Below, piece by piece: positions 13,344 through 43,692 of a stretch of 64,000 nt of DNA. The translations under genes were made by a program, and so were the position numbers. Each line of letters opens with the position of its first letter. Within the stretch, counting starts at the first letter, position 1. Location: positions 248,001 through 312,000 of IMG/VR virus record IMGVR_UViG_3300040801_001224; one strand, written 5' to 3'. Below the pieces are notes generated by a model. That model was not told the origin of the DNA, did no database searches, and saw only the letters and a program-made list of their open reading frames with translations.

Positions 13344-13536
13344 AGTTTATTTAAATATACTAAGTAGCAAACATCGTTTATATTAAAACCTTGGGTAAGA
13401 TGTTGGACATTAGTTTAATTGGCAGAACGCTTGCTGGCTGGATAAGACCTTAGGAGTCATGACCTATCGTTGCTCCGATAGCTGGCTTGAAGTGGGGTTC
13501 GAGTCCCCGTGCCCACTTAGTATATTTAAATAAACT
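13344..13536 (+). ncRNA. tRNA-like RNA with central insertion, enclosed by a 22-bp perfect inverted repeat
   Basis: 13344-13365 is the exact reverse complement of 13515-13536; D arm GTTTAATTGGCAGAAC and T arm GGGGTTCGAGTCCCC inside. Confidence 0.65.
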
Positions 13537-13542
13537 TTTAAT

Positions 13543-13621
13543 GGCGGCTATAGCTTAACAGGTTTAAAGCCCCTCTCTGTGAAAGAGGAAGATGTCGGGT
13601 CGGATCCGACTAGTCGCCCCA
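13543..13621 (+). tRNA. tRNA-His(GTG)
   Basis: G-1, C73, CCTCT-CTGTGAA-AGAGG, CCA; atypical T loop GTCGGAT. Confidence 0.9.
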
Positions 13622-13627
13622 AACAAC

Positions 13628-13703
13628 GGTAATGTAGCTCAGTGGTAGTAGCACATGATTCATACTCATGCGGTCGTTGGTTCAAATCCAACCATTACCA
13701 CCA
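13628..13703 (+). tRNA. tRNA with CAT anticodon (probably elongator Met)
   Basis: cloverleaf, CATGA-TTCATAC-TCATG, CCA. Confidence 0.9.
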
Positions 13704-13710
13704 AATTTAT

Positions 13711-13783
13711 ACTCTGTTGGAGAAACCGGTTATCTCGTCAGACTTTCAATCTGGAATTACGGGTTCGAGCCCCGTACAGAGTG
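13711..13783 (+). tRNA. tRNA-Glu(TTC), no encoded CCA
   Basis: ACTCTGT/ACAGAGT, TCAGA-CTTTCAA-TCTGG. Confidence 0.9.
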
Positions 13784-13794
13784 CAAACTATTAC

Positions 13795-13823
13795 TTGACA
13801 TTACCACTTTTTAATAGTATAAT
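13795..13823 (+). promoter_or_regulatory. sigma70-type early promoter with CCAC box
   Basis: TTGACA-17-TATAAT. Confidence 0.85.
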
Positions 13824-13842
13824 GTCAATATTAAGAAGTAAG

Positions 13843-14003
13843 TGTGTTTACAGGGTGTGAAGGCATGGGAAACGACATGCCGACAAATTCTCGAATGTCA
13901 GAGATAGGCACTGGTGTTTGAGAATGGATAAAGCCTCACCGCCTAAGAGCCATGAGCTCTATTGAGGTTGCTGGTTAGATTCCAGCCGCACCCTGTAAAC
14001 ACA
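13843..14003 (+). ncRNA. structured RNA with 15-bp closing stem and T-arm-like hairpin
   Basis: 13843-13857 pairs perfectly with 13989-14003; GGCATG/CATGCC; GCTGG-TTAGATT-CCAGC; own promoter. Confidence 0.7.
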
Positions 14004-14216
14004 TTAAGATAATGGTCTAAGCTGACCGTCGCGACAACCGATATGCTAAGTAACTGATTTAGCGGTTAGTGAAACACATAGAGGACAATGCTTCAAGGAG
14101 GATTTCCACTGCCTTGTAAAACAAAACGGTGGAGCCAAATTCAATGGGACCTCCCTGGTGATATATTACGCAAACGTCATAGTTTGTTAGCGCAACCATA
14201 GGCCCGCCAAATTTAA

Positions 14217-14293
14217 GGGGATGTAGCATAGTTGGTTAATGCGCCGGCCTGTCACGTCGGAGACCGCGAGTTCAAGTCTCGTCATTCCCGCCA
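14217..14293 (+). tRNA. tRNA-Asp(GTC)
   Basis: cloverleaf, CCGGC-CTGTCAC-GTCGG, CCA. Confidence 0.95.
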
Positions 14294-14300
14294 ATTTTAA

Positions 14301-14391
14301 GGAAGGTACCGCTAAGTGGCTGGCAACCTGGTTTGAACCCAGGGGCGTTGATTGAGAGTCGGCGGGGGTTCGATTCCTCTACCTTCCTCCA
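14301..14391 (+). tRNA. tRNA-Ser(TGA)
   Basis: CCTGG-TTTGAAC-CCAGG, long variable arm, CCA. Confidence 0.92.
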
Positions 14392-14559
14392 AACCGGTAA
14401 CCGTTAGTATCTAGACTATGTGAGGCACCACAGACGTGGCGAACGGTTAGCATAGTTGACCAATAGGTGGTGGAGAATGCCACTGGGACGGTTTAATGCT
14501 GTCGCAAGACCGCTATAGGGGAGCAACGATACTGAGAGTGCGAACCCCACCAATTTTAT

Positions 14560-14650
14560 AGTAGGTTGCCAGAGTTGGTCTATTGGCGCGGACTGCTAAT
14601 CCGTTGGGTTCTAACGAGCCACGTGGGTTCGAATCCCACACCTACTGCCA
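14560..14650 (+). tRNA. tRNA-Ser(GCT)
   Basis: GCGGA-CTGCTAA-TCCGT, long variable arm, GCCA. Confidence 0.92.
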
Positions 14651-14656
14651 AATAAT

Positions 14657-14743
14657 GTATGTGCGTCAGAGTTGGAGAGCTGAAGCGGACTGTAAACCCG
14701 TTGCCAAAGTGCTGAATAGGTTCGATTCCTATCACATACACCA
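14657..14743 (+). tRNA. tRNA-Tyr(GTA)
   Basis: GCGGA-CTGTAAA-CCCGT, long variable arm, CCA. Confidence 0.92.
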
Positions 14744-14898: not shown

Positions 14899-14983
14899 AT
14901 TTTTCTTGCCGATGTGGTGTACAACACATCATTAAATAATGCCATACACGTAAAGTCACTGTGGGGGCAAGAACATTTTATAT

Positions 14984-15058
14984 GGGTCACGGTCTGGGTA
15001 ACCGGGTTGGTCTCCAAAACCGACTGTCTGCCAATTTCGATTATTGGGTGGCCCGCCA
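14984..15058 (+). tRNA. tRNA-Trp(CCA), degenerate D and T arms
   Basis: GGGTCAC/GTGGCCC, TTGGT-CTCCAAA-ACCGA, GCCA. Confidence 0.7.
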
Positions 15059-15220: not shown

Positions 15221-15336
15221 ATTTTTATCTTCGCAGACCTGTAACCATATTCTGCCTCCGCCGTCGACGAAAACAGGATGGGCTGTCGGCGCAAGGTTTG
15301 TAGTTATCCTGACCCAAAACTACATCCATTTTCTGT

Positions 15337-15419
15337 CGCAGGCGAGTGGAACGGATATATAAACCATACCGGGCTCATAACCCGTGTGATACTGGGTTCG
15401 ACTCCCAGGTCTGCTACCA
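15337..15419 (+). tRNA. initiator tRNA-fMet(CAT)
   Basis: unpaired C1, GGG/CCC anticodon stem, enlarged D loop. Confidence 0.85.
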
Positions 15420-15421
15420 AT

Positions 15422-15497
15422 GGAGAGTTAGCTTTGTAGGTCAAAGCGTCCGGTTGAAGCCCGGAAGAACCTGGTTCGAATCCTGGACTCTCCACCA
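15422..15497 (+). tRNA. tRNA-Phe(GAA)
   Basis: TCCGG-TTGAAGC-CCGGA, CCA. Confidence 0.9.
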
Positions 15498-15516
15498 AAT
15501 TTAGATAAATAGTGTT

Positions 15517-16665: not shown

Positions 16666-16672
16666 ATTTTTT

Positions 16673-16830
16673 TAACTTGTGCCGGAACTGGTATACGGGG
16701 GTGTGGTCTCAGTCAATATGAATAGGGTTGTGAATAAAGAATAGCAACTCTTGTACCCAGGGCGAAAACCACCAGGCGGTAAGCAGTACAACGCAAAACG
16801 CCATTGTAGGTTCAAATCCTACCAAGTTAA
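16673..16830 (+). tRNA. class II (Leu/Ser-type) tRNA gene with about 53-nt insertion in the anticodon loop
   Basis: TAACTTG/CAAGTTA acceptor, Leu-type D arm, GTAGG-TTCAAAT-CCTAC, GTGGT/ACCAC stem enclosing 60 nt. Confidence 0.65.
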
Positions 16831-16902
16831 TTATGCGCGGTCCACGTTCCTCGCTGTAACTTTTGTTACATAGGTTGTGATTATGGCGGCGCACCATTTT
16901 AT

Positions 16903-17798: not shown

Positions 17799-17827
17799 TT
17801 GACAAACCCATTATACTCTAGTATAAT
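17799..17827 (+). promoter_or_regulatory. sigma70-type promoter of the giant ncRNA
   Basis: TTGACA-17-TATAAT. Confidence 0.85.
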
Positions 17828-17833
17828 ACAATT

Positions 17834-18697
17834 CAAAGTTAAGCAATGTCGCATATCGACGATAAGGCACTGAAAGGTGTCGAAGGATGGGAATCCAACA
17901 GCCCATCACCAGCAATGGTAGAGGTATGCAAGCCGAGACTCCAATAAGATATCAGTCATGCTGGTATTAGGAGACAAAGGCTCTCTTAGGGAAGTACCCC
18001 CAGGCCAACGGTGAGGGGCGAAAGTAACAGGTGAAGCTGACTACCTAGGGTTCAAAGAGCTAAGTTGACAGAGTCAAAGGGTAGTGTTACTTGTACAAGA
18101 CTTAGCGGTCGAGTGCTGTGACGCAGTCTTATAGGTAGTGTCCACAACCAGGGCATAATATCTAGAAAGACAACTGAAAAGTAACCTTAGCGGGTGAAAC
18201 AGTATTCGGTGTAGCGTATTCTGTACTCCAAAAGAGTATGGACCGTTTTAGAGGCGCACATCGAGGTTGGTTTAAGTTAGCTCAATTGGTTAGAGCAACG
18301 GCATTTTGGAGCCGTGGGTTCTTGGTTCAATTCCAAGACTTACATACAAAAACGCAAAGACGCCTCTACGTAGTAGTAACGATTAAATGACTTAATTGTC
18401 CGTACACTCCGGTGAATACGGAATAGGTTGAACTCGCAAGGTGACGCCTAGTTTGTTTGAAGTCGCACATTGGATTTAGCGATCCTTAACTGCTCGCAAG
18501 GCAGATGGAACACTGACAGCAGAAACGACTACTATAAAAGTGTAAACGCCAGCACTATAAAATGGGCAGTCATGCTTGATACCGAAAGACGAGACCACGG
18601 TCTGTCCAAGGGGAGTAGGGCTTAACTAGCAAGGTCGCACTTGTTAGGTACGAGTTCCGAATGATCAAGTGTAATACGTCCTAACTCTCAGACGTAT
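17834..18697 (+). ncRNA. probable GOLLD giant ncRNA with embedded tRNA-like domain
   Basis: about 860 nt with no ORF over 60 aa, GC-richer, many hairpins, two CTCGCAAGG motifs, 3' GTGTAAT..CTAACTCTCAG hairpin, tRNA-cluster context; family assignment from memory. Confidence 0.7.
18271..18344 (+). tRNA. tRNA-like domain (Gln TTG-like, 8-nt loop, no CCA) inside the giant RNA
   Basis: GCTCAATTGGTTAGAGC D arm, ACGGC/GCCGT, CTTGG-TTCAATT-CCAAG. Confidence 0.7.
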
Positions 18698-18783: not shown

Positions 18784-18870
18784 GCCGAGGTGGAGGAACT
18801 GGTAGACTCGCGGTCTTTAGGTGTCCGTTCCATATTTGGAGTGTGGGTTCGACTCCCACCCTCGGCACCA
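18784..18870 (+). tRNA. tRNA-Leu(TAG)
   Basis: GCCGAGG/CCTCGGC, TTTAGGT loop, long variable arm. Confidence 0.9.
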
Positions 18871-18886
18871 ATTGAAAAGTTTTAAT

Positions 18887-18962
18887 GCCACTATAGCTCA
18901 GCTGGTAGAGCGCCACACTTGTAATGTGGATGTCCCGTGTTCGATTCATGGTGGTGGCACCA
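18887..18962 (+). tRNA. tRNA-Thr(TGT)
   Basis: CCACA-CTTGTAA-TGTGG, CCA. Confidence 0.95.
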
Positions 18963-19217: not shown

Positions 19218-20048
19218 ATGATAGGAAAATGCTCATGTGTTATATGTAAAAAACAGTACTCTGGAAAGGGGATACACACCCATGCCGACAGAACTCATGG
19301 TGACGAAGAGACAAAAGCCAAATATAGTTCAGGATATAATGGCAGATACAATGATCCAGAACATATGAAAAACTTAAAAAAGTCATTAAAAAAGTTTTAC
19401 GACAAAGAGTTAGGCCCTAAAAAAACATATAATGTTTCTTGCCATAAGTGTGGTAAAGATTTCGATGTAACCGAAAGAGAAAATCAATTTCCGTCTAAAG
19501 AAAAATATTTCTGTTCTGCAACTTGTAGAAATACTAGGTCGCATACAGAAGCCACAAAACAGAAAATAAAAAAATCACTCAGAAAATATAATGGGCCTGA
19601 AAAAATATATGAAAAGACATGCCCTTGGTGTAGTAAAATTCACACTACTAAGGAAAAAAATAAAAAATTCTGCTCGCGAGATTGTGCCACAAAACATAAA
19701 TCGGCAGAAGCCAGGAAACATCGTTCGGCATATAAGAACTACAGGGCAGATTGCGAATTTAGGTTTAATCTAAAAGATTATCCAGAAGAATTTAATTTCG
19801 CACTTATTGAAGAGCATGGATGGTATAGTGCGGCCAATAGAGGAAATAATCTATATGGTGTGAGCCGAGATCACATAGTAAGTGTGAAATACGGCTTTGA
19901 GAATAATATAGATCCAGCTATTATATCTCATCCAGCAAATTGCCAGTTAATGATACATTCGGACAATGTATCAAAATATACGAATAACGATTTAACAATC
20001 GACCAGCTTTTAGAGAAGATCGAAATCTGGAATAATAAATACATTTAA
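19218..20048 (+). mobile_element. HNH-type homing endonuclease gene with Zn-finger modules
   Basis: CxxC repeats, FCSxxC, SRDHIVSV..HPANCQLMIHSDNVSK. Confidence 0.85.
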
Positions 20049-22230: not shown

Positions 22231-22309
22231 TTGAAGTACCCTAGAAGCAAGGGAAACCAAGTCGGAGACATTTTATATGTTGGTCAGGCGACAGGCGAGG
22301 GTACTTCAA
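22231..22309 (+). ncRNA. small RNA cassette with 12-bp perfect closing stem
   Basis: TTGAAGTACCCT/AGGGTACTTCAA. Confidence 0.55.
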
Positions 22310-22328: not shown

Positions 22329-22751
22329 ATGCAGATATTAACATTCATAGAAGACAGGGAAGCGTATGCCATTGACATAATGCAGGTCAAAGAAATTATA
22401 CGTTTAGATGAAAGTGCTGTGCGTCCTGTGCCTGGTGAAGGACCAGAGCATTATGGTTTAATGTATTTGCGTGAGACACCAATCAGTGTATTTAATGCCA
22501 ACATTGTGTTAGGATTAGCCGACACTGAAATAACAGATGAAACCCGTATTATTATATTGGAAGACGACGGACAGTTATATGGATTTTCATGTGACTCAAT
22601 ACGTGAAATATATCGGGTAGATGAAGGGGATATACAGAACCCTGTGGAACGTAGTAGATTTATACGTGGGGTTATATACTGTAAGGAACGTGATGAAACA
22701 GTCGTAATACTGGATCACGAAAACTTATTTGAATCCTTTTCAGAAAGATAA
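22329..22751 (+). CDS. cheW: chemotaxis coupling protein CheW
   Basis: YAIDIMQVKEII, GLMYLRETPISVF, RIIILE, GFSCDSIREI, FIRGVI, VVILDHENL. Confidence 0.9.
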   Translation: MQILTFIEDREAYAIDIMQVKEIIRLDESAVRPVPGEGPEHYGLMYLRETPISVFNANIVLGLADTEITDETRIIILEDDGQLYGFSCDSIREIYRVDEGDIQNPVERSRFIRGVIYCKERDETVVILDHENLFESFSER

Positions 22752-22822: not shown

Positions 22823-23422
22823 ATGGATTATAACGAATACATAAATGAAGATGGCACGTATACCTCTCCGAAAAACGGAAAAGTATATAAGTCAAAAAAA
22901 GCGTTAATATCGCATTTAAACTTTAAGAAATCTAAAACTACTGGATTCGCGGTAGTGAATAACACTAAAGTAAAATGTCAATATTGTGAGAAAGAAACTA
23001 CGCCACCGAATATTAAGAAGCATGAAGAATCATGTTATATGAATCCAAAAAATATTCGAGAATGTGTAGTTTGTGGGACGATCATTAAGAACAAGGAAAG
23101 TAAAGGAACTTGTTCACATGCTTGTTCAAACACGTATTACCGCCATGGTAAAGAAGGTGGAACGCAATATAAAACAGATGAAGAGCTTATATCAAGGAAT
23201 AGATATCAAGACCTTTGTTTTAGGCACCATGGTAAAGAATGTATCGTGTGTGGTGAAAAAAAGATTGTAGCGGCACACCATATAAACCACGACCACAATG
23301 ATAATCGTGTAGAAAATTTAGTTCCTCTATGTCCGACGCATCATCAGTACATACACAGTAGGTACGCAGATGAAGTACAACCATACATAGATGAATTTTT
23401 AGAAAAGTTAAACTCTCTGTAG
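22823..23422 (+). mobile_element. HNH homing endonuclease gene
   Basis: CIVCG..VAAHHINHDHNDNRVENLVPLCPTHH. Confidence 0.92.
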
Positions 23423-23599: not shown

Positions 23600-23932
23600 A
23601 TGAAATAGACTAAACCAACATTACGTTTGTGGAAATGGGGAGAAGATAGATTTTCCCATCTTGGATACAAAATATTCACAGTGTTTTACTGTAAGTACTT
23701 TGACTTTTATATATTTAAATATCAACCAGGTGCCTATATACCAAAACACAAAGATCCAGGAAAATGGCATTACAGATTAAATTTTATATTTGGTGGTGAT
23801 GGCAAGTTTATATGTAAAGGTGCGTTAATAAACACCAAGTACATAACACTGTTTAGAGCGGACAAGTATTACCATAAGACAACACCAACTTCCACGACAC
23901 GTTATGTTGTAAGTTTTGGTCTAAAGTTTTGA
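23600..23932 (+). CDS. 2OG-Fe(II) oxygenase-like protein with in-frame TAG at codon 3 from the best start (or TTG start at 23627)
   Basis: IPKHKDPG (HxD), HYRLNF, distal H and RYVVSFG; AAGGA-9nt-ATG AAA TAG in frame. Confidence 0.65.
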
Positions 23933-23999
23933 GCCATTGAGGCCAGCCTAAGGATTCTAAACCCAGAAGGCGCCGGTTCAAGTCCGGCATGGCTCACCA
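23931..23999 (+). tRNA. aberrant 69-nt tRNA-like gene, possible CTA anticodon
   Basis: GAGCCAT/ATGGCTC-ACCA and GCCGG-TTCAAGT-CCGGC perfect; tiny D arm; weak anticodon stem around TTCTAAA. Confidence 0.5.
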
Positions 24000-24291: not shown

Positions 24292-24626
24292 ATTTGCTCC
24301 TCGTTAAACACTAAGGTACCTGATGCGAGGCGAAGGGTTCAATTCCCGGGTGAGGACGTTGCACAACTATCCTTGCCTAGTACCAGAGCAAATTTTTTGA
24401 TACTGAGATGTAAAAACATGCGTGACGAGAATCGCCCCTTAAATGGGCTTGGAGAGAGCGATTTCCCTTTCAGTATTAACTTTTTAATGCGTACAGACCT
24501 CAAAGGTGTACCGCTGAAGCTTGGTCCAAGTAGACACGTAGAGCTTCATGTTGACTGGGTGAGAGGCCCTTTGCGTTGTAGGTAGGGATGCGGCCACCGG
24601 CTTTGAGGAAACCTTCTACGCATTAA
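24292..24626 (+). ncRNA. three tandem stem-enclosed RNA cassettes
   Basis: 24292-24393 (8 bp, internal GGGTTCAATTCCC), 24397-24479 (10 bp), 24484-24626 (10 bp plus CCTCAAAG/CTTTGAGG). Confidence 0.65.
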
Positions 24627-25022: not shown

Positions 25023-25928
25023 ATGAAACTAATCGTAATTTTATTCCTATCCTTATTCGTTGTATCCTGTGGGGGTGGAGGGAATAAGAGAGATGATACC
25101 AGACAGCCTCCAGTAATACCACCGCAGAAACCCTTTGTGGAAATATTTCCTGAATACAGGACTTATTTAAAAATGTATGGAACCCAGGATCAAATAAACA
25201 AAAACTCATGGGTATTCACAAGTCATAAAATCGACTATGAAGAATGTGAACGAAACGACACATCTCCCTGTCGGAAGACCAAAAAGCTATATTACTATGA
25301 CGCAAACCATGTTCCTGGTCGTGAAACAAAATGGACTTTTAACTTAACTGTTAATAAGTATAACATAATTGATCCACCTTACTGGATTATCATATTCCAA
25401 GATTGGTTCGATTATGATCCGAATGATTTTACTCCATCAGGCGCACAAGGCGGTAATCCACCATTTCAGACATTGAAGCTAAAAGAGTTTAGGGGTGCCT
25501 TACATTTAGGTGTGTTCAACAACAGGTGGCAATGGAACTATGACTATAACAATCCATATAATCCAACCGACCCAAGTGCCAATGACATTGACAAGCGACC
25601 AGTAAATGAACTAACAGGTTCCATACCGTTAGTCGTTGGAAGAACGTATCCAGTTGAAATAATCATTAGAGATGGCATAACACTTGAGCGTGGCAGTGTA
25701 CAGGTCAAGGTAAACGGTCGTCAGGTGAGCAACCAGTTTTACCGAACAAAGCCAGACAGATCTCCCCGCCCTGGTGCTGTTCAATTTGGACAATACTGGG
25801 ATAGAGAATACAATGGAAGAATTAATGGTTGTGTTGAAGCAACAGGCGAGTTAGAAAAGGACTGTAAGAGCAACACAGTAACTATAGAAAACTTCAGAGT
25901 ATTTGAGCGGAACGCTTTAACACAATAA
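25023..25928 (+). CDS. lipoprotein, possible polysaccharide-lyase-like beta-jelly roll
   Basis: lipobox VVS|CGGGG; WIIIFQDW and QFGQYW resemble lyase-fold strands; function tentative. Confidence 0.5.
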   Translation: MKLIVILFLSLFVVSCGGGGNKRDDTRQPPVIPPQKPFVEIFPEYRTYLKMYGTQDQINKNSWVFTSHKIDYEECERNDTSPCRKTKKLYYYDANHVPGRETKWTFNLTVNKYNIIDPPYWIIIFQDWFDYDPNDFTPSGAQGGNPPFQTLKLKEFRGALHLGVFNNRWQWNYDYNNPYNPTDPSANDIDKRPVNELTGSIPLVVGRTYPVEIIIRDGITLERGSVQVKVNGRQVSNQFYRTKPDRSPRPGAVQFGQYWDREYNGRINGCVEATGELEKDCKSNTVTIENFRVFERNALTQ

Positions 25929-26398: not shown

Positions 26399-26433
26399 TT
26401 GTTTGTATTGAAGTCTAAGTGATAAATAAAAGT

Positions 26434-27186
26434 ATGGACAAACCATATCACTACGTTTATCGCATCACAAATCTCCTGGAGTCAAAACATTATTATGGCT
26501 CCAGGAGTTCGATAAATAAACCACATGAAGATCTTGGAGTTGTGTATTTTTCGTCAAGTAGTGACGAGCAGTTCAAGAAGCTTCAGGTGTCACAGCCAGA
26601 AATATTTAAATATAAGGTAATAAAATCATTTAGTAGCAGAGAGGATGCGATTTTATTTGAAATAAAGTTACATAAAAGATTCAATGTCAGTAGTGAAGAC
26701 AAGTTCTATAACAAAGCAATTCAGTTGACTTCTGGTTTCAGTAACTACGGAAATAAAGAGATAGGAGACAAAATTTCCGACAAAGCCATCGGCCGTTTTA
26801 AGGGGCAAACTTATGAAGAAATTTACGGTGAAAACAAAGCAACAGAACTAAGGAAATTGCGTTCTGAAAACATGAAAAGTCATTTGAAACAAAATCCAGG
26901 AATCAGAGACGGTGAAAAAAATCCAAATTATGGAAAAAAATGGAATGATGAAAAACGAAAAAAAATGTCTAAAAGACAACAGGGTGAAAACCACACTCAA
27001 TATGGTTACTTTTGGGTTACAGATGGCAAAATAAATAAAAAATTACCGCCGAACTCTGAAATACCCAACGGCTTCACAAAGGGAAGAACTTGGCCTATTA
27101 CACAATGTCCTCACTGTGGTTACGAAGGCCGTGGACCAAATATGAAAAGAATACACTTTGATAGATGTGAAGACAAAAATAAATAA
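26434..27186 (+). mobile_element. GIY-YIG-type homing endonuclease gene with NUMOD3-like repeats
   Basis: YHYVYRITN..KHYYGSR, YFSSS, FYNKA, GEKNPNYGKK. Confidence 0.85.
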
Positions 27187-27196
27187 TTGCCCAATT

Positions 27197-27274
27197 AAGG
27201 GCGGGGGTCGTTTACACCAAACACCTTGAATGGTGACGGCCGGGGCATTGAAGGGGTGTCTGTACAAAGCCCTT
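27197..27274 (+). ncRNA. structured element sharing segments with tRNA-Val
   Basis: AAGGGC/GCCCTT ends; TCGTTTACACC identical to 27312-27322. Confidence 0.4.
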
Positions 27275-27284
27275 CGCACTTTCT

Positions 27285-27359
27285 AGTCCGGTAGCTCAGA
27301 GGCAGAGCACCTCGTTTACACCGAGGGGGTCGGGATCTCGGAATTCCCCCGGACTACCA
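27285..27359 (+). tRNA. tRNA-Val(TAC), atypical T loop
   Basis: CCTCG-TTTACAC-CGAGG, CCA; T loop CTCGGAA. Confidence 0.88.
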
Positions 27360-27374
27360 ATTTTTACGATAAAT

Positions 27375-27977
27375 ATGAGCATGAATACTCCTAACACCAT
27401 ACTGTGTATGTTTTCCGGTGGATTAGATTCCACTGGCATGCTCTACCGTCTATTAACAGATCCAGAGTATGGTGAGTATAATATACATGTTCACCACGTC
27501 AAGATGTGTAATAGAGAAAACCGCCAACAAGCAGAGTCGATTGCTGTTGAAAACATTATTGGATGGTTTCACAATAACGGCATGTCTAATTTTAGATATA
27601 CTGAAAACACCATTGATTTTGAATTCCTTAAACATGGAAACTTTCCCTGGGATTCGGATGTTACTAATTTTGTTGCCGGTAATATCGTTAAGAATAAGAA
27701 AAATACTTATAAGTATATCGCTTTTGGTAGAACTAAAAACGATACAAACAGGACTATTACGTCATTATCAAATGACATATTAGAAGGCGTCCTGAGAGGC
27801 CGTCCTGTTGAAAAAATATATCCTATAACTGACCTAACAAAGGAAGAGTTATGGGATTACCTTCCTGAGGAATTGCGGGAATACACGTGGTCATGCCGAC
27901 GCCCCAAATATATTGACGGTGTCCCTACAGCATGTGGTCGCTGTGTTCCCTGCAAAGATCTAAAACATATCAAATAA
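27375..27977 (+). CDS. queC: QueC-like PP-loop ATPase
   Basis: MFSGGLDST, WSC.......CGRCVPC zinc site. Confidence 0.8.
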   Translation: MSMNTPNTILCMFSGGLDSTGMLYRLLTDPEYGEYNIHVHHVKMCNRENRQQAESIAVENIIGWFHNNGMSNFRYTENTIDFEFLKHGNFPWDSDVTNFVAGNIVKNKKNTYKYIAFGRTKNDTNRTITSLSNDILEGVLRGRPVEKIYPITDLTKEELWDYLPEELREYTWSCRRPKYIDGVPTACGRCVPCKDLKHIK

Positions 27978-29760: not shown

Positions 29761-30561
29761 ATGAAAGTAGCAATTGTGGGCTATGGCTTTGTCGGGAGAG
29801 CTGTGGATGCCGCGTACATAAATACCGACGTTGAAATGCTTATTGTGGATCCCCACAGTTCTGACGCCACCCACACATTAGAACAAGCTTGTGCTGAAGC
29901 AGATGTGTTCTTTGTTTGTGTTCCTACCCCACCTAAAGAAGATGGTAGTTGTGATGCTAGTATAGTTGACGGAGTTTTACGCAAATTGAGCGCATGTAAG
30001 TGCCAGAAAAAACTGGTTATCCTAAAAAGCACATTAACGCCTGACTACCTGGAAGTAATGAAAGAGTACAAGCTTAAGCTCGTATATAATCCAGAGTTCT
30101 TGCGTGAAAGCCATTATGTTGAAGATTATTTGAATACAGAAGTACACATAATGGGTGGTCTCAAAGAACATGTTGACGAAGCAAAACAAATACTGGCACT
30201 GTCTAACTGTAGGAGCAACCGGGTATTCTGGTGCCACCAGGGAAACGCAAGTTTAGCAAAGTATGCGATAAACAGTTTTTTAGCTATGAAAACTGTGTTT
30301 ATGAATGAGATGTACGAACTACAAAAAAATATTGAAACAAAAGGTTCTTATGAAGAGTTCATACAACTCATGAGCCTAGATTCCAGAATCGGAGACAGTC
30401 ACATGAATGTGCCGGGACCAGATGGTTATTATGGCTTTGGGGGCAAGTGTTTCCCAAAAGACACGAAGGCATTGATTGAATATGCCAAGAAGTTAGGCTG
30501 TGAAGTACAGACCATTGAGCAAGCATGTATTAAAAACGAAAAAATTAGAAAGAAAGCGTGA
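29761..30561 (+). CDS. ugd: UDP-glucose/GDP-mannose dehydrogenase family protein, lacking C-terminal domain
   Basis: GYGFVG, FVCVPTP, KST, YNPEFLRE, KYAINSFLA, GFGGKCFPKD. Confidence 0.9.
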   Translation: MKVAIVGYGFVGRAVDAAYINTDVEMLIVDPHSSDATHTLEQACAEADVFFVCVPTPPKEDGSCDASIVDGVLRKLSACKCQKKLVILKSTLTPDYLEVMKEYKLKLVYNPEFLRESHYVEDYLNTEVHIMGGLKEHVDEAKQILALSNCRSNRVFWCHQGNASLAKYAINSFLAMKTVFMNEMYELQKNIETKGSYEEFIQLMSLDSRIGDSHMNVPGPDGYYGFGGKCFPKDTKALIEYAKKLGCEVQTIEQACIKNEKIRKKA

Positions 30562-30626
30562 CATAGTTCACATTAAATTACACGGTATTATGGATAAATA
30601 CGGGAAAGGTAACCAGGGAATTGGCA

Positions 30627-33600
30627 ATGAACAAGTTAAAACTACTGTTATTAACAGCATTTCTTACACTATCATTGGGTGCTGATGATACAGAAATATA
30701 TCAATCAAATGTAAATAATAATTCTGGCGAGAAACCAAAGGTCTTAATTATATTTGATAATTCATCAAGTATGGTGACTAACAACGTAACACAGCAAGCA
30801 GTTGCGTATAATCCAAGCATAGATTACAATGGCAGTTTTCGTGATGACCGAATATATTGGTCCACAACAGGGACACCATCTGGCAATAACTATTTTAATG
30901 CTGGCCGTAACCGTTGTGCTGAATCATACGGACCATTAGCGGCTGAAGGCTTCTTTCAGACCAGGGCGCAACGTTGGCGTAGTAGTGGGCGTTTTGGTGG
31001 GTCATGGCGAAACCTAAGTCGCCGGGTAACAACACCGGTTCACGTTGATTGTGAAGCAGATGTGATCGCTGGCAATGTTGGCAATGGCAGTGGACAGAGT
31101 GATGGTCTTCCCTCACCAACTGGTCCTTACGGCGGCACTGGTAACGTCAACTGGGGTGGCAACTCTTATACATTCTATACAGGCAACTACCTAAACTGGT
31201 TCTTTAACGCCAGCACAGTTGAATCGACACGTTTAGCAGTAGCACAAGACGTAATACGTGACCTGGTATCTGCTAATACTGGCATTGATTTTGGCCTGAT
31301 GATATTCAACAATAACTCTGACTCACGTTGGGACGGTGGTCGAATCGTTAACTCCATTGTAGAAGGTGACGACGGAACACAGAGACAGTCCATATTAAAC
31401 AACATTGGACTGATAAATCCAAAAACCGGATCGCCATCTACCTTCACCCCACTATGTGAAACAACGTATGAAGCGTATCGTTATATGAGTGGACAGAGTG
31501 TTGTATTTGCCAATGAGATAAGATTAGGTGAAGACACTATACCCAAGGACCCTAAGGCTGAAAGCCCACTAGGTGTATACGATTCACCTGCTACGGACTG
31601 TGCTTTTACGTATATCATTCTAATGACAGACGGACAGCCAACTCGCGATGAGTCAGCAAATCAGTTCATACGTGATCTGACAGGCAAGGATTGTCTAACA
31701 TATGGTAATACCACAAGTTGTCTACCAATAATCGCAGAATACATGGCTAATACTGATCTAGACAATGACACAACTAATGGTAACCAGTATGCTATTACGT
31801 ATACCATTGGATTTACTACTGACCAGGAACTTTTACAGGATACAGCACGTTTGGGCAAGGGACAATACTTTACTGCTAATGATACAGCAAGTCTAACGGC
31901 GGCTTTCCAGGGTGCTATTACAGCCATCCTATCCACTAATTCAGCATTCACTTCACCAGCAGTAGCAGTGGACACGTTCAGCCGAACAGAGTCACGTGAC
32001 GATATATTCTTTGCTATGTTTGAGCCAAGTGACACAACTAACTGGCCAGGCAACATCAAACGTCTACGATTAGCAGATAGTTCTGGTGATAAAATACTAG
32101 TGGATGTCAATGGAGATCCTGCCCTCGATCCTTCTACCGGACGTATCAGAGACACGGCACAGACGTACTGGTCACCAAACATAGATGGCAATCAGGTAAC
32201 TGAGGGTGGTGTGGGTGAGCTATTAGCTAGGCGTGATCCTGATACTCGTGAGATTTACACTAACACTGGAACCGGTGGTTCATTAGAAGACTTTGATGAT
32301 GTTGCGTTCGATGTTGGTGCGTTTGGTGTCACAGATATAAATCAAGTGTATGATGAATTTAACGTAACTAACGCCATACAACTAACAGATTTGATCCTTT
32401 GGTCAGCTGGTTATGATGTTGATGACGAAAATAACAATGGTGACCGAACTGATGCGAGACCCTGGATACTTGCCGACATGCTACACTCAAAGCCTCTAGC
32501 TATCAACTATGGCGCAACAGGCGGTGTGTACGATAAAGACAACCCAAATATCAAGCTAGTAGTAGGCACTAATGGCGGTTTCTTCCACATGTTCAGCACT
32601 GACACCGGTGTAGAAGATTGGGCATTCTTCCCTAAAGAACTCAGCAGTATGTTGTTGGAAAGACGTGCTGAACGTGTGACTGCTGATAACGTATATGGCA
32701 TTGATGCTTCACCAGTTGTTTATATACTGGACAAAGAGCTTGACGGCACTATTGACGCCAGTGACGGTGACCGAGTTTATGTGTACTTTGGGTTACGTAG
32801 AGGAGGTAGCATACTATACGCTTTAGATATCACTGACCCAGGTAGCCCAGAGTTCTTATTTAAAATCGACAGGAACACAACTGGTTTTAGTCTATTAGGA
32901 CAAACTTGGAGTGAGCCATTGGTGACTACAATATCAGGACACGATGGTCCAGTGCTAATCTTTGGTGCTGGCTACGACACAAATAAGGACGCAACTGGCG
33001 TTGGTACGCCAGACAGTGTGGGCTTGGGTGTCTATGTCGTTGACGCAATCACCGGTCAACTGTTACGCAGTGTGACGCCAGCCGCTACAACTAACACCAA
33101 CCTACAAGCACCTATACAGCACAGTGTACCAAGTAATATTGCTGGCATAGATTCAAATGGTGGTGGTAATACCGACAGACTATACTTTGGTGACACTGGC
33201 GGTAACTTATGGCGTGTGGATATGCTTGGTGACCTTGACGAACAGAAATGGCGTGTCACTAAACTGGCTGATGTTAATGACGGAACGACGGCTGGTGATA
33301 GACGTTTCTTCAACGAACCGGATGTTGTTAGAACTAAGAGTACGCTATGTTTAGACGACGAGTGTACCCAAGTCGCTAATGTAAACTATGATGCGGTATT
33401 GATCGGTAGTGGTGACAGGACAAATCCTAACGCCACTGATGTAGCCAACGAGTTCTATATGTTCCGTGACTTCCAAACTGGAGCTTACAGTACTGACATA
33501 GCGGATTGCGATGATGACACAATCGTTGAATACAGATGCGACCTACCAATCACACCTGATGATTTGTATGACGCAACCACTGACATTGTTGGCACTGACG

Positions 33601-34013
33601 AAATAGCAGAAAAGAAACTACGTAAGTCTATGGGATGGCGTATTGGATTGAATGCTGTTGGTGAAAAAGCATTGTCCGAAAGTATAACGTTAGGCGGCAC
33701 AGTGTTCTTCACAACGTTCTCACCAGACCCACAGTTAGTGAGTGTTTGTGTGCCATTGCCAGGACAGGGTCGCTTATATGCTGTTCGGGTTTCCGATGCA
33801 TCTGCAACCAAAGACTTCAACAATGACGGTAACTTGGATAGAGAGTCATTACTGGGTAGCTTAATACCAGATGCACCCAGCTTACACTTTGGTGATGATG
33901 GGTTTATCCGTTTATTATTCCCGAGTGGCGGTGGTTTATCAGACACCAACCCTGTTAACAGTGGGGAGAGTTTGCCTGGCTTATATAGCATATACTGGTG
34001 GAGAGCTGAATGA
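30627..34013 (+). CDS. pilY1: type IV pilus adhesin PilY1/PilC (vWA-like plus beta-propeller)
   Basis: signal peptide then DDTEIY; IIFDNSSSM; MTDGQP; LADMLHSKP; GTNGGFFH; GQTWSEP; DRLYFGDTGGNLWRVD; GSGDRTNP; FTTFSP. Confidence 0.93.
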   Translation: MNKLKLLLLTAFLTLSLGADDTEIYQSNVNNNSGEKPKVLIIFDNSSSMVTNNVTQQAVAYNPSIDYNGSFRDDRIYWSTTGTPSGNNYFNAGRNRCAESYGPLAAEGFFQTRAQRWRSSGRFGGSWRNLSRRVTTPVHVDCEADVIAGNVGNGSGQSDGLPSPTGPYGGTGNVNWGGNSYTFYTGNYLNWFFNASTVESTRLAVAQDVIRDLVSANTGIDFGLMIFNNNSDSRWDGGRIVNSIVEGDDGTQRQSILNNIGLINPKTGSPSTFTPLCETTYEAYRYMSGQSVVFANEIRLGEDTIPKDPKAESPLGVYDSPATDCAFTYIILMTDGQPTRDESANQFIRDLTGKDCLTYGNTTSCLPIIAEYMANTDLDNDTTNGNQYAITYTIGFTTDQELLQDTARLGKGQYFTANDTASLTAAFQGAITAILSTNSAFTSPAVAVDTFSRTESRDDIFFAMFEPSDTTNWPGNIKRLRLADSSGDKILVDVNGDPALDPSTGRIRDTAQTYWSPNIDGNQVTEGGVGELLARRDPDTREIYTNTGTGGSLEDFDDVAFDVGAFGVTDINQVYDEFNVTNAIQLTDLILWSAGYDVDDENNNGDRTDARPWILADMLHSKPLAINYGATGGVYDKDNPNIKLVVGTNGGFFHMFSTDTGVEDWAFFPKELSSMLLERRAERVTADNVYGIDASPVVYILDKELDGTIDASDGDRVYVYFGLRRGGSILYALDITDPGSPEFLFKIDRNTTGFSLLGQTWSEPLVTTISGHDGPVLIFGAGYDTNKDATGVGTPDSVGLGVYVVDAITGQLLRSVTPAATTNTNLQAPIQHSVPSNIAGIDSNGGGNTDRLYFGDTGGNLWRVDMLGDLDEQKWRVTKLADVNDGTTAGDRRFFNEPDVVRTKSTLCLDDECTQVANVNYDAVLIGSGDRTNPNATDVANEFYMFRDFQTGAYSTDIADCDDDTIVEYRCDLPITPDDLYDATTDIVGTDEIAEKKLRKSMGWRIGLNAVGEKALSESITLGGTVFFTTFSPDPQLVSVCVPLPGQGRLYAVRVSDASATKDFNNDGNLDRESLLGSLIPDAPSLHFGDDGFIRLLFPSGGGLSDTNPVNSGESLPGLYSIYWWRAE

Positions 34014-35936: not shown

Positions 35937-36189
35937 GAGTCAGGCAAGAAACGAGGATAGACAACCGTGTAGTTACGGAGAGTGTTTACACTCTATTAAC
36001 TAATACATATGATGAGATCGAGCCTGTATGTATGTGTGCTTAGATGAATGAAGACTTGCACATTGCTACACACGAATAGGCAGGCCCCTGCACATTGCGT
36101 TTTGTGTATTGCGCGAACAGTTTTTGAAGCCGAGTGCCTTAAACTGCCGATTGCACCTTGCTTTGTCTATTACTCACTTGCCTTGACTC
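35937..36189 (+). ncRNA. structured 3' RNA with three TGCAC(A/C)TTGC repeats
   Basis: GAGTCAGGCAAG/CTTGCCTTGACTC and ATAGACAA/TTGTCTAT long-range stems; repeats at 36056, 36088, 36151. Confidence 0.7.
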
Positions 36190-40091: not shown

Positions 40092-40523
40092 ATGCGTATA
40101 TTTGAAATGACAGACTATGAGTTGGTTGAGGTAACACTAACTGAGTCAGCAGTTGTAGAAGACATCCCGGAGCCAGATGACCCGAATGCTATGGGCAAAC
40201 ATGAATTCTTCATTAAGCGTCCAAGTGGTGAGTCATCATATTACACAACAAAGGGTGACATGCCCTTCGCCAAAGCCAAAGAACTTGCCAAAAAATTATC
40301 ACAGGGTGGCGAAGTACAATACAGCTCAATGAATGCTGGCGGCTATGCTGATCCAATGGCTGATCAGTTCAGCATGAACCCACGTGATATAGAACCAGAA
40401 TTTGAGAATCCAAAACCATCTGGCATGTTAGACCGAACTGGCATAAAGACTAAGAAAGTCCCAGCATCAACTAAAGCAGGACTGTTAGATCGTTTACGTG
40501 CCGCAAAAAAGGAGATTGAATGA
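40092..40523 (+). CDS. hypothetical protein
   Basis: ORF track; GAGGA SD. Confidence 0.7.
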   Translation: MRIFEMTDYELVEVTLTESAVVEDIPEPDDPNAMGKHEFFIKRPSGESSYYTTKGDMPFAKAKELAKKLSQGGEVQYSSMNAGGYADPMADQFSMNPRDIEPEFENPKPSGMLDRTGIKTKKVPASTKAGLLDRLRAAKKEIE

Positions 40524-40756
40524 TGAGTGAACTACCAGGAAAAGATTTATCCGAAAAAGAATATAGCATTTGGAAAAAACTACAATCAAGACGATTCACA
40601 ATGGCAATGCTTGTTATCATCGTTTCATCTCTAATGCTATACAAGGGACTTATACAGCCAGAAAACTATGAAACACTAATGATATGGATTAGTGGCATCT
40701 ACATTATTGGCAAACCATTCGGTGATATGATTGGTGAAATATTAGCAAAGAAATAA
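40520..40756 (+). CDS. small two-helix membrane protein
   Basis: SRRF..hydrophobic helices, possible holin-like. Confidence 0.65.
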   Translation: MMSELPGKDLSEKEYSIWKKLQSRRFTMAMLVIIVSSLMLYKGLIQPENYETLMIWISGIYIIGKPFGDMIGEILAKK

Positions 40757-40757
40757 C

Positions 40758-42788
40758 ATGCGCCTAAACGACATCCTATTAGAACTAAACTTTAACAAGA
40801 GTGATGTTCGCCAACTAGCACTTAACAGTAAAGTTGATTGCGGCTTTGAAGCTGAGTTAGTCTGGCCTATAGACGATGGCGGCATGGATTCATCAACTAT
40901 TCAAGATATGGACTGGGATGATCTGCAAAACGCCATATATAACCAGGAAGGGCAACGGGGTGTTGATTCAGTCAGACAAGTGTATGACCAATGGGTCATG
41001 GACTATGCGTATGATGAAGTATACTCTAGTCACCTTGAATCTATAATAGAGAATAATACCGAAAGCTGGCACTGGACCGAGTTCGTAGAAGAAGACGAGG
41101 ACAAGTTCAGGGACTGGTGCGAAGATAACGATAAAGAGTTTGACGTACAGGATCAGGCAACTATCGAAGAGTGGATAGAAGATGATGTCGTAGCAAATGA
41201 TGAATGGCGTGAATGGATTCGTGAAAAGCTAGACTATGATGGCACGTTATCGGATGCCATATTTGAAATCGTAAATGAAGAATACGATATAGACTACTGG
41301 CTATCAAGAAATAATGTATATGATATTTTAAGCGATGCTGAAGTTTATGTGGACGAGTTTGATGAAGATGTTTATATAGAACAAATAGCAGAAGAAATAG
41401 GCCCTATACTAGAACGCTATAGTCAGTTTGACAGTTACGTGTATGGTGGTTACCACAGCAACACGGGCTCAACAGCTATGTGGCGTATTGAAACTGATAG
41501 CTCAATTGAATCGAACACGTATAGTGACGGTGAATTTGTCGGTGTAGAAATAATTAGTCCTGTATTTGAAACGCCTGGCGACATGTTGGAGGAAATGGAA
41601 ATGCTATTCAACAATCTGCCAGCCACAGTTGGAACAAATTCAAGCACAGGTTTACACGTTACAATGAGTATGCCACGTAAGACAGACTCTAAACCAAATA
41701 AACTAAAGATGGCCTTACTGTTGGGTGAGAAGTTTATCCTAGATATATTCAGCCGTCGTGGCAATTCATACACACTACCACATGGTGACAAAATCTTACA
41801 AAAACTACTACAAATGGATCCAGCTGAAATTAATGACTTGCGCTTTGAAAAGCTAGAAAAATTAGTTACAAGCCAAATGGAACAAGCCAAGTATAGCACT
41901 ATTAACTTCAAGAGTGAAGAGAACGAATATGGCAATCAGCTTATTGAATTCCGTGTTGCGGGCGGAACAGACTACGAAGTATACATGGATAAAATTGAAA
42001 AGACTGTGGTGCGTTATGCGACTGTTATGCGAGCTGGCTATTCGGACTTTTACAAAGAAGATTACGCAAAGGCACTCACACGTTTTGTACACAAGATATC
42101 AAAAGTTACCAAACAAGCTACTGGTGACGATCCTATCCTAAAGGCATTCGTTGCCATGGGCAGTCCAAATAATGCTAAATCTATTGACCAACAGTATAAA
42201 GATGCTAAGGCAAACGAAATGGAAGGCTTCATGACTGAAGCTGAAGAAAGGCTGTATAACATGGTACGTGTGGCCCTGGAAAATGTTGATGTGCAGAAGT
42301 TTAAAAAGGACGTTAACCCTAGTGTGTCACGTGGTGTGAAAATGGCGTTTAAGCGTTTCAACGGCCATCCAAAGAGATTTTTAGAAAGGCACCCCAGAGC
42401 TCTAAAAGAATACTATGCCCTACAACGTGTATTCAGACAGCCAGATCAGATAGAAGCTTTCGTTGATAAGCCCTGGGAAAAAGTATTCATACTAACTAAC
42501 AATGCCCTGGAAAACTTAAAGCAGGGCAAGCCTGTTGGTTATGATCAGATCCATGTGGGACACAAGTCACTCATGTATTCCTGGGATGATGCCGTTAAGT
42601 TTAGACAGCACAATTCAGAAGACAAGGTAGAAAAATCTAAAAAAGAACTCACAGATAAATTCAATGTAGACTATGATTGGGATTTAACCGGTGAACCGAA
42701 CAAATGGGTAGTCATTGACGGTGGCCGTATAGACTCGAAGTTCATGCAGGCACTATTCATGATGAAAATATTAGTACTGAGTACTTGA
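40758..42788 (+). CDS. putative amidoligase (COOH-NH2 ligase fold) with acidic insertion
   Basis: GFEAE, WRIETDSSI, EIISP, STGLHVTMS, KYSTINF, IEFRVAGG. Confidence 0.85.
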   Translation: MRLNDILLELNFNKSDVRQLALNSKVDCGFEAELVWPIDDGGMDSSTIQDMDWDDLQNAIYNQEGQRGVDSVRQVYDQWVMDYAYDEVYSSHLESIIENNTESWHWTEFVEEDEDKFRDWCEDNDKEFDVQDQATIEEWIEDDVVANDEWREWIREKLDYDGTLSDAIFEIVNEEYDIDYWLSRNNVYDILSDAEVYVDEFDEDVYIEQIAEEIGPILERYSQFDSYVYGGYHSNTGSTAMWRIETDSSIESNTYSDGEFVGVEIISPVFETPGDMLEEMEMLFNNLPATVGTNSSTGLHVTMSMPRKTDSKPNKLKMALLLGEKFILDIFSRRGNSYTLPHGDKILQKLLQMDPAEINDLRFEKLEKLVTSQMEQAKYSTINFKSEENEYGNQLIEFRVAGGTDYEVYMDKIEKTVVRYATVMRAGYSDFYKEDYAKALTRFVHKISKVTKQATGDDPILKAFVAMGSPNNAKSIDQQYKDAKANEMEGFMTEAEERLYNMVRVALENVDVQKFKKDVNPSVSRGVKMAFKRFNGHPKRFLERHPRALKEYYALQRVFRQPDQIEAFVDKPWEKVFILTNNALENLKQGKPVGYDQIHVGHKSLMYSWDDAVKFRQHNSEDKVEKSKKELTDKFNVDYDWDLTGEPNKWVVIDGGRIDSKFMQALFMMKILVLST

Positions 42789-42813
42789 CAAACCACTTCT
42801 ACTATAGTATAAT
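42785..42813 (+). promoter_or_regulatory. sigma70-type early promoter with CCAC box
   Basis: TTGACA-17-TATAAT. Confidence 0.85.
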
Positions 42814-42838
42814 ACTTCTATTAAATAAATAAACGTAT

Positions 42839-42925
42839 GCCGTCATGGAGAAATTGGTAGACTCAGGAGACTTAAAATCTCCCGCTGTTAAAGGCGTCCT
42901 GGTTCGAGTCCAGGTGGCGGCACCA
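42839..42925 (+). tRNA. tRNA-Leu(TAA), second copy
   Basis: GGAGA-CTTAAAA-TCTCC, long variable arm, ACCA. Confidence 0.95.
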
Positions 42926-42929
42926 AGAA

Positions 42930-43692
42930 TTTAACAATGCGTCACAATTAGGACCAGGTAAGACTGGCGAGGAGCCGAACCCTTAATCTAGTAATAGGCA
43001 AGGCACACAAATCATAGGAACTTGACAGGTTCCCGTTGTTAAACAATTTAGCAGGGTTACATCAGTCGACGGGTGGCCTTTCGGTGGAGGAGATTTACCT
43101 TTATGGGGAAAAACCGAACCTGCTAAAACTTATTTAAGTCCACATCCTTTAAATAGGACACGTCCGGCTGGTAGCGTTGAGAGTGGCATAAGTCTGTAAG
43201 GACAAGCCCGGTCGCTTTTTATTTTTGCTTATGTTGAGGTAGTTTAAGTGCGTAGTAACTGACTACGTATGTCGACTACAAAGTAGGTAAGGCAGGGAGG
43301 ACCGTATCCTATATGTATCCAAAGGCCACGGAATACGCTAGGACTAATCTTGCTCATCAGAGTCGAAAAGTGAGCCAGAAGTAACATAGCAGTATGTTGC
43401 GAATATAAGCAAATATTTTTTTATTGAGTAGTAGTCGTGCTATGATCCGCCGGTCTTAAAGACGTGTAGATGGGGAGTATGTTAAATGGTTCATGGTAGC
43501 CAACGAGTTGACTTAGAGTCACCAGAAGCTAACCTATTAGTGGTTTAGAAGGTTACACGCCCGCTGAACATACTATTCAATAACTTATACTACAATGGCG
43601 GTAGACCGCTGGGTTCACCAGAGCCGACTACAATGCTGGTACCGAAAGGGAAGATGCCATGATCAAATAAAATCGCCGGACTAGTTCCGGCG
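42930..43692 (+). ncRNA. array of about six stem-enclosed structured RNA cassettes
   Basis: closing stems 42930/43043, 43047/43127, 43224/43413 (12 bp), 43421/43583 (13 bp), 43595/43660; no ORF of 60 aa or more. Confidence 0.7.

Follow-up and report, generated by a model that had tools for sequence, protein, structure and literature searches.

The transfer RNA (tRNA) islands found in 64 kb of a phage genome appear, from their sequence, to be polycistronic RNA operons, in which co-transcription is predicted for tRNA genes and a set of stem-closed non-coding RNA (ncRNA) units. The stretch, hereafter the window, comprises positions 248001–312000 of IMGVR_UViG_3300040801_001224, a 328-kb phage contig, and the survey was confined to these 64 kb; coordinates without a prefix refer to the window and to its + strand. 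It is rather probable that promoter-driven operons here carry about 30 tRNAs, one GOLLD-like RNA and at least 20 other structured RNAs of 70–250 nucleotides (nt) head to tail, and that the structured RNAs share one design for release and stabilisation while their cargoes are unrelated. The units combine a common packaging, consisting of a closing helix and an A/U linker, with a different cargo each, and do not form one sequence family. They are RNA genes, which are gained and lost as whole cassettes.

Eleven of the units, U1 to U11, had been proposed in an initial annotation as non-coding, stem-closed elements packed between tRNAs and separated by short A/T linkers. The coordinates of all eleven hold: in the minimum-free-energy fold the 5′ and 3′ ends of each unit pair with one another through 8–22 terminal pairs, and no + strand open reading frame (ORF) of at least 40 amino acids (aa) fills any of them. 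U1 (13344–13536) consists of a perfect, A/U-rich closing helix of 22–25 base pairs (bp) around a tRNA-like domain without CCA. Its fold has a z-score of −3.35 with 22 terminal pairs, a result as good as which was reached by 0 of 200 shuffles, and a stem search returned a stem of 25 bp. The most stable unit is U2 (13843–14003), a 161-nt RNA with a 17-bp closing helix and a four-hairpin junction (minimum free energy −72.2 kcal/mol and z = −7.9, matched by 4 of 200 shuffles). U3 (22231–22309, 79 nt, 12-bp closing helix, z = −3.85) lies between a tRNA-Asn and a CheW-like gene. Three consecutive domains follow in U4 (24292–24393, 102 nt, 8-bp closing helix, with an internal hairpin resembling a canonical T-arm), U5 (24397–24479, 83 nt, 10–11 bp closing helix including a G-U pair) and U6 (24484–24626, 143 nt), the 10-bp closing helix of which is extended by a second helix, giving 18 terminal pairs (equalled in 2 of 200 shuffles). 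U7 (35937–36189) is a multi-branched RNA of 253 nt with two stacked closing helices (z = −3.7), situated between genes for proteins of 185 and 89 aa. The remaining four belong to a single array: U8 (42930–43043, 114 nt, 9–10 bp closing helix with a G-U pair), U9 (43047–43127, 81 nt, with the helices P1 and P2 and, at 43077–43119, a core that hardly varies), U10 (43224–43413, 190 nt, 12-bp closing helix, z = −3.8) and U11 (43421–43583, 163 nt, 13-bp closing helix with a G-U pair). The proposed packing between tRNAs does not apply to U7 and U4–U6, which sit between protein genes.

The annotated number of at least eleven was indeed a lower bound, and at least nine more of this type were found. 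Two of them, 14014–14213 (about 200 nt, ending in GCCA and matching no Rfam family) and 14395–14553 (about 160 nt, with ACCA after its 3′ hairpin), run into an A/T linker, as the tRNAs do. A 71-nt stem-closed unit (14903–14973, z = −3.2) separates a tRNA-Gly from an atypical tRNA-Trp. The fold of 15233–15421 displays a tRNA-like RNA with a 9-bp terminal stem and a 3′ CCA, that of 16672–16789 a canonical T-arm on which the 8-bp closing helix stacks, the body being expanded (14 terminal pairs, equalled in 8 of 200 shuffles), and 16793–16896 ends in GCGCACCA before an A/T linker. The others are a structured spacer upstream of an atypical tRNA-Val (27187–27284), a unit at 43128–43223 and the last unit of the U8–U11 array (about 43584–43665).

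Whole-folding of the short islands, in which the previously assigned boundaries were not used, returned the same domains for U3, U4, U5, U6 and U7; the long islands gave spurious long-range pairs and their whole folds were left aside. In segments bounded by tRNA and ORF annotation alone, non-overlapping stem-closed domains tile 85% of 2872 nt of non-tRNA spacer DNA, compared with 62±5% in dinucleotide shuffles and likewise 62% in length-matched coding pieces, and 0 of 200 of either control reached 85%. For 17 of 19 units the fold of the + strand is better than that of the − strand. Neighbouring elements are separated by 0–12 nt of A/U-rich sequence, the same as for the tRNAs. The linkers are 90% A/T, which bears out the annotated likeness to tRNA linkers, and resemble the AAUUU/AUUUU run found after the encoded CCA of every tRNA. 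Moreover, four non-tRNA units (14014–14213, 14395–14553, 15233–15421 and 16793–16896) end in NCCA followed by a linker of the tRNA type.

Seven sigma-70-type promoters matching the consensus at 12 of 12 positions (TTGACA-17-TATAAT) are present in the scanned range at 13795, 17799, 21403, 35303, 38662, 42785 and 44339, all on the + strand, where far fewer than one would be expected by chance. Those at 13795, 17799 and 42785 are located directly upstream of arrays. The first (13795–13823) precedes U2 and a tRNA/ncRNA array reaching to about 15497, and the second heads the GOLLD-like RNA (17799–18694). The third (42785–42813) precedes a tRNA-Leu(UAA) and seven ncRNA units, and is conserved in the syntenic relative L120 (ENA sample ERZ23498493) and in L090, which is 99.8% identical to L120. 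This array of one tRNA and seven other RNAs, at 42.8–43.7 kb, is closed by a terminator-like hairpin at 43674–43692. Units and tRNAs thus occupy the same promoter-to-terminator spans on the same strand, and with promoters upstream and a terminator-like hairpin at the end the arrays look like promoter-to-terminator RNA operons. An extended form, in which the spacer contains CCACTT, is common to the promoters inspected in the window and in L120, and looks like a phage early-promoter class.

Because the units share both linkers and transcription spans with the tRNAs, a common processing route, as put forward in the initial annotation, is a reasonable inference. The ribonucleases (RNases) of Escherichia coli include RNase E, which cleaves unpaired A/U-rich sequence beside tRNAs, RNase P, for which a stem with NCCA after it is an acceptable substrate, and RNase III, whose targets are long, perfectly paired duplexes. 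These preferences point to the linkers, the CCA-ended stems and the U1 helix as cut sites. Host RNA polymerase would transcribe the arrays from the very strong promoters; cleavage would follow in the A/U linkers by host RNase E, at the four units with a terminal stem plus NCCA by RNase P, and in the 22–25 bp helix of U1 by RNase III. The closing helices would block 3′ exonucleases, so that each module could accumulate as a stable small RNA. The cargoes would be under selection of their own, some of them tRNA-derived or tRNA-like and most of them new folds. As a working guess, the RNAs may be trans-acting and affect translation or RNA metabolism of the host at an early stage of infection.

Concerning the cargoes, an all-against-all BLAST of 21 units revealed only chance words of 9–10 bases, and each unit and repeat arm is present only once in the window; nor did a covariance model of U9 find a second copy there. 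Within these 64 kb, the family that had been annotated as genome-wide is accordingly one of architecture and not of sequence. Two groups can be distinguished. The first is tRNA-like or tRNA-derived and comprises U1, 15233–15421, 16672–16789 and the CCA-ended units. In the tRNA-like domain of U1 a D-arm is present, the T-arm is canonical, the acceptor stem forms 6 of 7 pairs, and the anticodon arm is replaced by a long arm; when introns are allowed (-i), ARAGORN reports it as a weak tRNA-Ile with a 41-nt ‘intron’. The unit at 15233–15421 combines a 7-bp acceptor stem and a canonical T-arm with an anticodon-like loop in which CAU is read, and has a hairpin of about 120 nt in place of the D-arm; ARAGORN and Rfam call it neither a tRNA nor a transfer-messenger RNA (tmRNA), and no tag reading frame was identified. 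The three annotated T-loop hairpins are located in U1 and U4, where the T-arm is canonical, and in U2, where it is near-canonical; the other listed units have none. None of the eleven units is called as a tRNA by RF00005 (at least 29 bits) or by ARAGORN without introns. The second group, the majority, carries no tRNA feature; U3 and U5–U11 belong here.

This division bears on the function proposed in the initial annotation, a library of tRNA mimics or decoys set free by one release route, which would soak up anticodon nucleases or other tRNA-directed defences or serve as scaffolds resembling Y RNAs. The arms and acceptor-like stem kept by U1, the tRNA-like build of 15233–15421 and 16672–16789, the four NCCA ends, and the position of U9 in a tRNA slot of another phage (L126, see below) are all in line with such a library. 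As an explanation of the whole set it is nevertheless unlikely, given that most units have no tRNA feature and are mutually unrelated. The likeness to YrlA Y RNAs is not borne out by the Rfam comparison: the best matches to RF02553 score 18.7 bits (E = 0.8, 18842–18911) and 17.2 bits (E = 3.3, 15360–15481) against a gathering score of 69, and both span tRNA borders and overlap none of the eleven units. Moreover, in our own reading of the fold the ends of U1 leave from the acceptor side, at variance with the YrlA topology. Of the genes that might accompany such RNAs, those with Ro60/TROVE, RtcB or RNase III domains were sought among 40 window ORFs scanned with Pfam, and none was found. Only for the tRNA-like minority is a role as mimic or decoy plausible.

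Support for discrete structured RNAs, which the initial annotation had assumed, comes from covariation in U9, U7, U11, the 43128 unit and the last unit. In L120, whose ATPase and amidoligase are 87% and 50% identical to those of the window, the promoter, tRNA-Leu, U9, the 43128 unit, U11, the last unit and U7 are retained. U8 and U10 are missing, each precisely at the linkers, as judged from alignment and sequence. U7 is 77% identical to L120:1566–1758, lies within the same flanking gene order and shows compensatory double changes in 5 pairs; a coding function is ruled out by indels of 5 and 2 nt relative to L120, which are not multiples of 3. Of the 4 compensatory pairs in U11, 2 belong to the closing helix; the 43128 unit and the last unit show 3 such pairs each. 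Within units, too, whole hairpins have been inserted or deleted: the L120 copy of U11 is devoid of one internal hairpin, and the window copy of the 43128 unit has a 28-nt insertion. The first 19 nt of the Rfam consensus of Staphylococcus aureus tsr31 (RF02580) are identical to 43147–43165 of this unit, an overall match of 21.6 bits (E = 0.67) that is unconserved in L120 and probably due to chance.

Outside this array, the spacer at 27187–27284 is more conserved than the neighbouring genes, because it is 92% identical to L119:1418–1515, compared with 82.6% for the flanking genes. More distant relatives, recognized by an ATPase of 69–80% identity (L123, L124, L125, L129 and L130), are without the whole array. 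Other routes to homologues brought little: the 80 IMG/VR loci fetched via UvdE share tRNAs and no ncRNA unit; homologues of a 301-aa protein (25023–25928) lie in tail modules of unrelated phages, the one close relative being the 1.6-kb contig L119; searches of IMG/VR with the amidoligase and the ATPase, and pattern scans for the cores of the 43128 unit and the last unit, returned the window's own contig only. A two-part pattern for the U7 core (gap 44 nt, allowed 30–60) missed even that contig and is uninformative, so that negatives from wide-gap patterns in this viral-contig collection may be unreliable.

U9 occurs in four phages, namely the window phage, L120, L106 (identical to L128, with the same stretch in L127) and L126. 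The L106 and L126 copies were recovered by a 17-base core string and a two-part pattern; in the stretches fetched, neither phage has detectable protein similarity to the window. U9 is intergenic in L106 and lies between the tRNA-Tyr and the tRNA-Leu of a 25-tRNA array in L126. A covariance model built from two of the copies found the other two. Both P1 and P2 have four different sequences in the four phages. On a model-guided alignment (MAFFT misaligned the helices), 11 of 12 P1/P2 pairs are changed on both sides and 98.8% of cells are paired, a value reached by 0 of 500 shuffles and approached by no slid register. In contrast to the rewritten helices, about 40 nt between and after them are almost invariant. 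This core contains GGUGGAGGAGAUUUACC and GGGAAAAACCG and carries a Shine-Dalgarno-like run. Helices rewritten around a fixed core argue for long divergence under selection and not for recent transfer. A pseudoknot may be proposed (31–34 with 59–62, and 36–39 with 67–70), the positions of which are invariant, so that covariation neither supports nor refutes it. A small ORF is ruled out, as the start codon is unconserved and the L120 frame is shifted relative to the conserved bases. U9 has no Rfam match at E up to 10 and is absent from INPHARED. In 185,579 bacterial and archaeal species, represented by one genome each, a first scan gave no match and a second gave one, located in a P-type ATPase gene and taken as chance. 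U9 is a candidate new phage RNA motif. Its surroundings in L106 display two near-identical direct repeats of 27 nt (6815–6841 and 7047–7073) which flank the ncRNA-bearing intergenic region; the second enters the start of the next ORF, and the pair could be an insertion footprint or a duplicated gene start.

A functional proposal for U9 can be made, albeit one that is doubtful. By our own reading, pairing is possible between GGAGGAGAUUUA and 11 of the last 12 positions that precede the 3′ tail of 16S ribosomal RNA (rRNA). U9 might then be the first of a new class of trans-acting phage RNAs, in which the core, possibly pseudoknotted, displays GGAGGAGAUUUA as an extended Shine-Dalgarno-like sequence and targets the 30S subunit. 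Alternatively it might be a new ligand-binding or self-cleaving fold, and the cassettes more broadly might represent an exchangeable RNA-gene platform for many effectors of large phages.

The conservation of U9 and U7 also bears on the weight that can be given to structured spacers or decayed tRNA pseudogenes, that is, to elements without a function of their own which are kept for correct processing of the flanking tRNAs. Some units do resemble damaged tRNAs, arrays come and go among relatives, and eight of the listed units have no detectable homologue. Yet a near-invariant U9 core flanked by two rewritten helices in four phages is the mark of long divergence under selection, U7 is conserved with compensatory changes although it adjoins no tRNA, and the seven RNAs beside one tRNA at 42.8–43.7 kb would be far too much spacer. 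This explanation is hence judged a little less likely even than the mimic library.

For U3, U4–U6 and U7 a cis-acting role, as riboswitch, attenuator or thermosensor in the leader of a downstream gene and not as free RNA, has to be considered. U3 ends 19 nt before the CheW-like gene, U4–U6 end 11 nt before an 87-aa ORF, and U7 separates the same two genes in L120 as in the window. However, three successive closed domains such as U4–U6 are unlike a single leader, the ribosome-binding sites are not visibly sequestered by the closing helices, and the same architecture is found without a downstream gene in the 42.8–43.7 kb array, which makes leaders an improbable reading of this subset. That the terminal inverted repeats act in DNA, as ends of miniature mobile elements, protein-binding palindromes or homing-endonuclease targets, would fit the perfect palindrome of U1 adjoining a GIY-YIG gene, the insertion and deletion of whole cassettes and the homing endonuclease genes scattered across the island, but is very improbable, since no unit or repeat arm occurs twice in the window, the G-U pairs of many closing helices pair in + strand RNA only, compensatory changes keep pairing and not sequence, and it is the + strand that folds better.

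Several observations nevertheless weigh against RNA operons with cassette-like units. Considered one by one, the short terminal helices lack significance, as 24–53 of 200 dinucleotide shuffles equal them. A count of stems of at least 9 bp is weak, with 10 observed against 4.8 in shuffles and 10 in coding DNA as well, and the fold z-scores of several units are weak too (−0.75 to −1.4). U1–U6, U8 and U10 have no homologue in the sequences searched, their support being folding and tiling only, and covariation for five RNAs comes from two sequences only. The 25-bp perfect palindrome of U1 contains no G-U pair and could equally be a DNA-level site. U3, U4–U6 and U7, being directly upstream of genes, could be cis-acting leaders. 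Finally, processing by RNases E, P and III is extrapolated from E. coli.

Among known RNA families, Rfam 15 at gathering thresholds recognizes only tRNAs in the window. The units had been annotated as undescribed, and none of the eleven matches any Rfam family, YrlA, GOLLD and ROOL included; the same is true of all units when short stretches are scanned under lax filters and E-value thresholds. A blastn search of four ncRNA stretches against 50,697 INPHARED phage records, T4 presumably among them, gave tRNA matches only, and U2 is without a match in either collection. No cultured phage in INPHARED is similar to the window beyond single tRNAs. ROOL had no match in any of the Rfam scans, and a tmRNA (RF00023) was detected in the window neither by ARAGORN nor by Rfam. 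The positive control for the latter, a tmRNA at L126:9604–9853, scores 63 bits, above the gathering score of 47. It is unusually short, about 250 nt, lies within the 25-tRNA array and is followed by a consensus promoter, a tRNA-Tyr and the 81-nt motif. L126, a phage with no detected similarity to the window phage, shares its layout of consensus promoters, tRNAs and stem-closed spacers (for example 7461–7617 and 10662–10776), together with the 250-nt tmRNA.

The sole non-tRNA Rfam match in the range is GOLLD (RF02032), an element that had not been annotated. The match, at 18206–18694, corresponds to the 3′ conserved domain and covers the whole model (positions 1–416) with 81.8 bits (E = 3e-21), below the gathering score of 150. 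The approximately 370 nt between the promoter at 17799 and the match may represent the variable 5′ domain of a GOLLD RNA. Situated in the GOLLD linker is a tRNA (18270–18347) with an 8-nt anticodon loop, for which ARAGORN gives the anticodon ‘tttg’, and further tRNAs flank the element on both sides. GOLLD and ROOL often occur near phage tRNA islands and GOLLD linkers sometimes carry tRNAs, so that the tRNA observed here agrees with published GOLLD biology (PMC12286853).

The tRNA complement itself comprises 26 genes found by ARAGORN between 13.5 and 42.9 kb. Rfam adds three tRNA or tRNA-like genes which ARAGORN missed: a class II tRNA-Tyr(GUA) at about 14657–14740, an atypical tRNA-Val(UAC) with an aberrant T-arm at about 27285–27356, and a D-arm-poor tRNA-like element at about 23931–23996, the loop of which could read CUA (amber). 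A fourth gene missed by ARAGORN, an atypical tRNA-Trp(CCA) at 14984–15058, was read from sequence and fold. Once these four are added to the 26 tRNAs, all 20 amino acids are covered. At the place matching the atypical tRNA-Val, L119 has a canonical tRNA-Val.

Nearly all genes of the window are encoded on the + strand. Homing-endonuclease-like genes (GIY-YIG, HNH and NUMOD3) are dotted through the tRNA island (12322–13242, 19218–20048, 22823–23422, 26419–27186 and 56768–57763). The one at 26419–27186 is missing from L119, where an RNaseH-like gene directly adjoins the conserved spacer. Host-like signalling and surface genes on this phage are represented by a hybrid histidine kinase (PAS-HisKA-HATPase-receiver, 5817–7694), the CheW-like protein (22329–22751) and a 1130-aa protein with a PilY1-type beta-propeller (30621–34013). 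Auxiliary genes encode a QueC-like PP-loop protein (27375–27977), a pair for NAD salvage (NMNAT-Nudix and NAMPT, 52821–55413), and a MoxR-type ATPase with a DUF2201 metallopeptidase/VWA protein (44415–45575 with 55525–56754). Read-through of the UDP-glucose dehydrogenase stop at 30559 was ruled out by many in-frame stops downstream.

In conclusion, about 4 kb of one phage genome is devoted to about 20 uncatalogued structured RNAs which follow the same stem-plus-linker plan and are swapped as cassettes. If the processing model is true, tRNA islands would be general launch pads for phage RNA effectors, and a closing helix plus an A/U linker beside tRNAs could be used as a search rule for new RNA classes in phage metagenomes. 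U9 is a concrete candidate, being short and having some 40 nt of core sequence that hardly differ among four phages; binding to the ribosome or to a ligand, as well as self-cleavage, is directly testable.

Comparison with known systems reveals that the closest precedents are RNAC and RNAD of phage T4, followed by the tRNA-island RNAs GOLLD, ROOL and tmRNA. RNAC and RNAD (species 1 and 2) are small non-tRNA RNAs from the T4 tRNA region whose function is unexplained after decades (PMC3014915, PMC9697503). Like them, the units of the window are genes for small non-tRNA RNAs inside a phage tRNA cluster, and share the strand and the predicted transcription unit of the tRNAs, but no sequence similarity was found in INPHARED, which gave tRNA matches only and is assumed to include T4-like phages. 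RNAC and RNAD are matured from the tRNA precursor by host enzymes. While T4 has two such RNAs, the window has about 20, in the form of tiled stem-closed cassettes, and some arrays contain far more ncRNA than tRNA. GOLLD and ROOL share the location near phage tRNA islands, and a GOLLD-like RNA is present in this very island; the eleven units, however, match neither family, measure 80–250 nt compared with 400–800 nt or more, and show no sign of multimers. In YrlA the two RNA ends form a long helix to which a tRNA-like module is joined. U1 has both parts, with its D-arm and T-arm and its terminal helix of 22 bp, but in a different topology, the long helix extending from the acceptor side; the other ten units are without such a combination. 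In bacterial rRNA processing stalks, pairing of the flanks encloses the mature RNA, which RNase III releases, and the A/U spacers after the CCA of tRNAs are cut by RNase E, as in E. coli. Here, in contrast, many different small RNAs are enclosed, and most closing helices (8–13 bp) are too short for RNase III. Phage tmRNA has the same outline as 15233–15421, with an acceptor stem, a T-arm, CCA and a large insertion, yet 15233–15421 keeps an anticodon-like arm. Unlike miniature inverted-repeat mobile elements, the cassettes have no terminal repeat that is present at several loci in the window. What is new here, relative to all these systems, is the number of RNAs, the uniform cassette plan, the turnover of whole cassettes between relatives and one well-supported motif.

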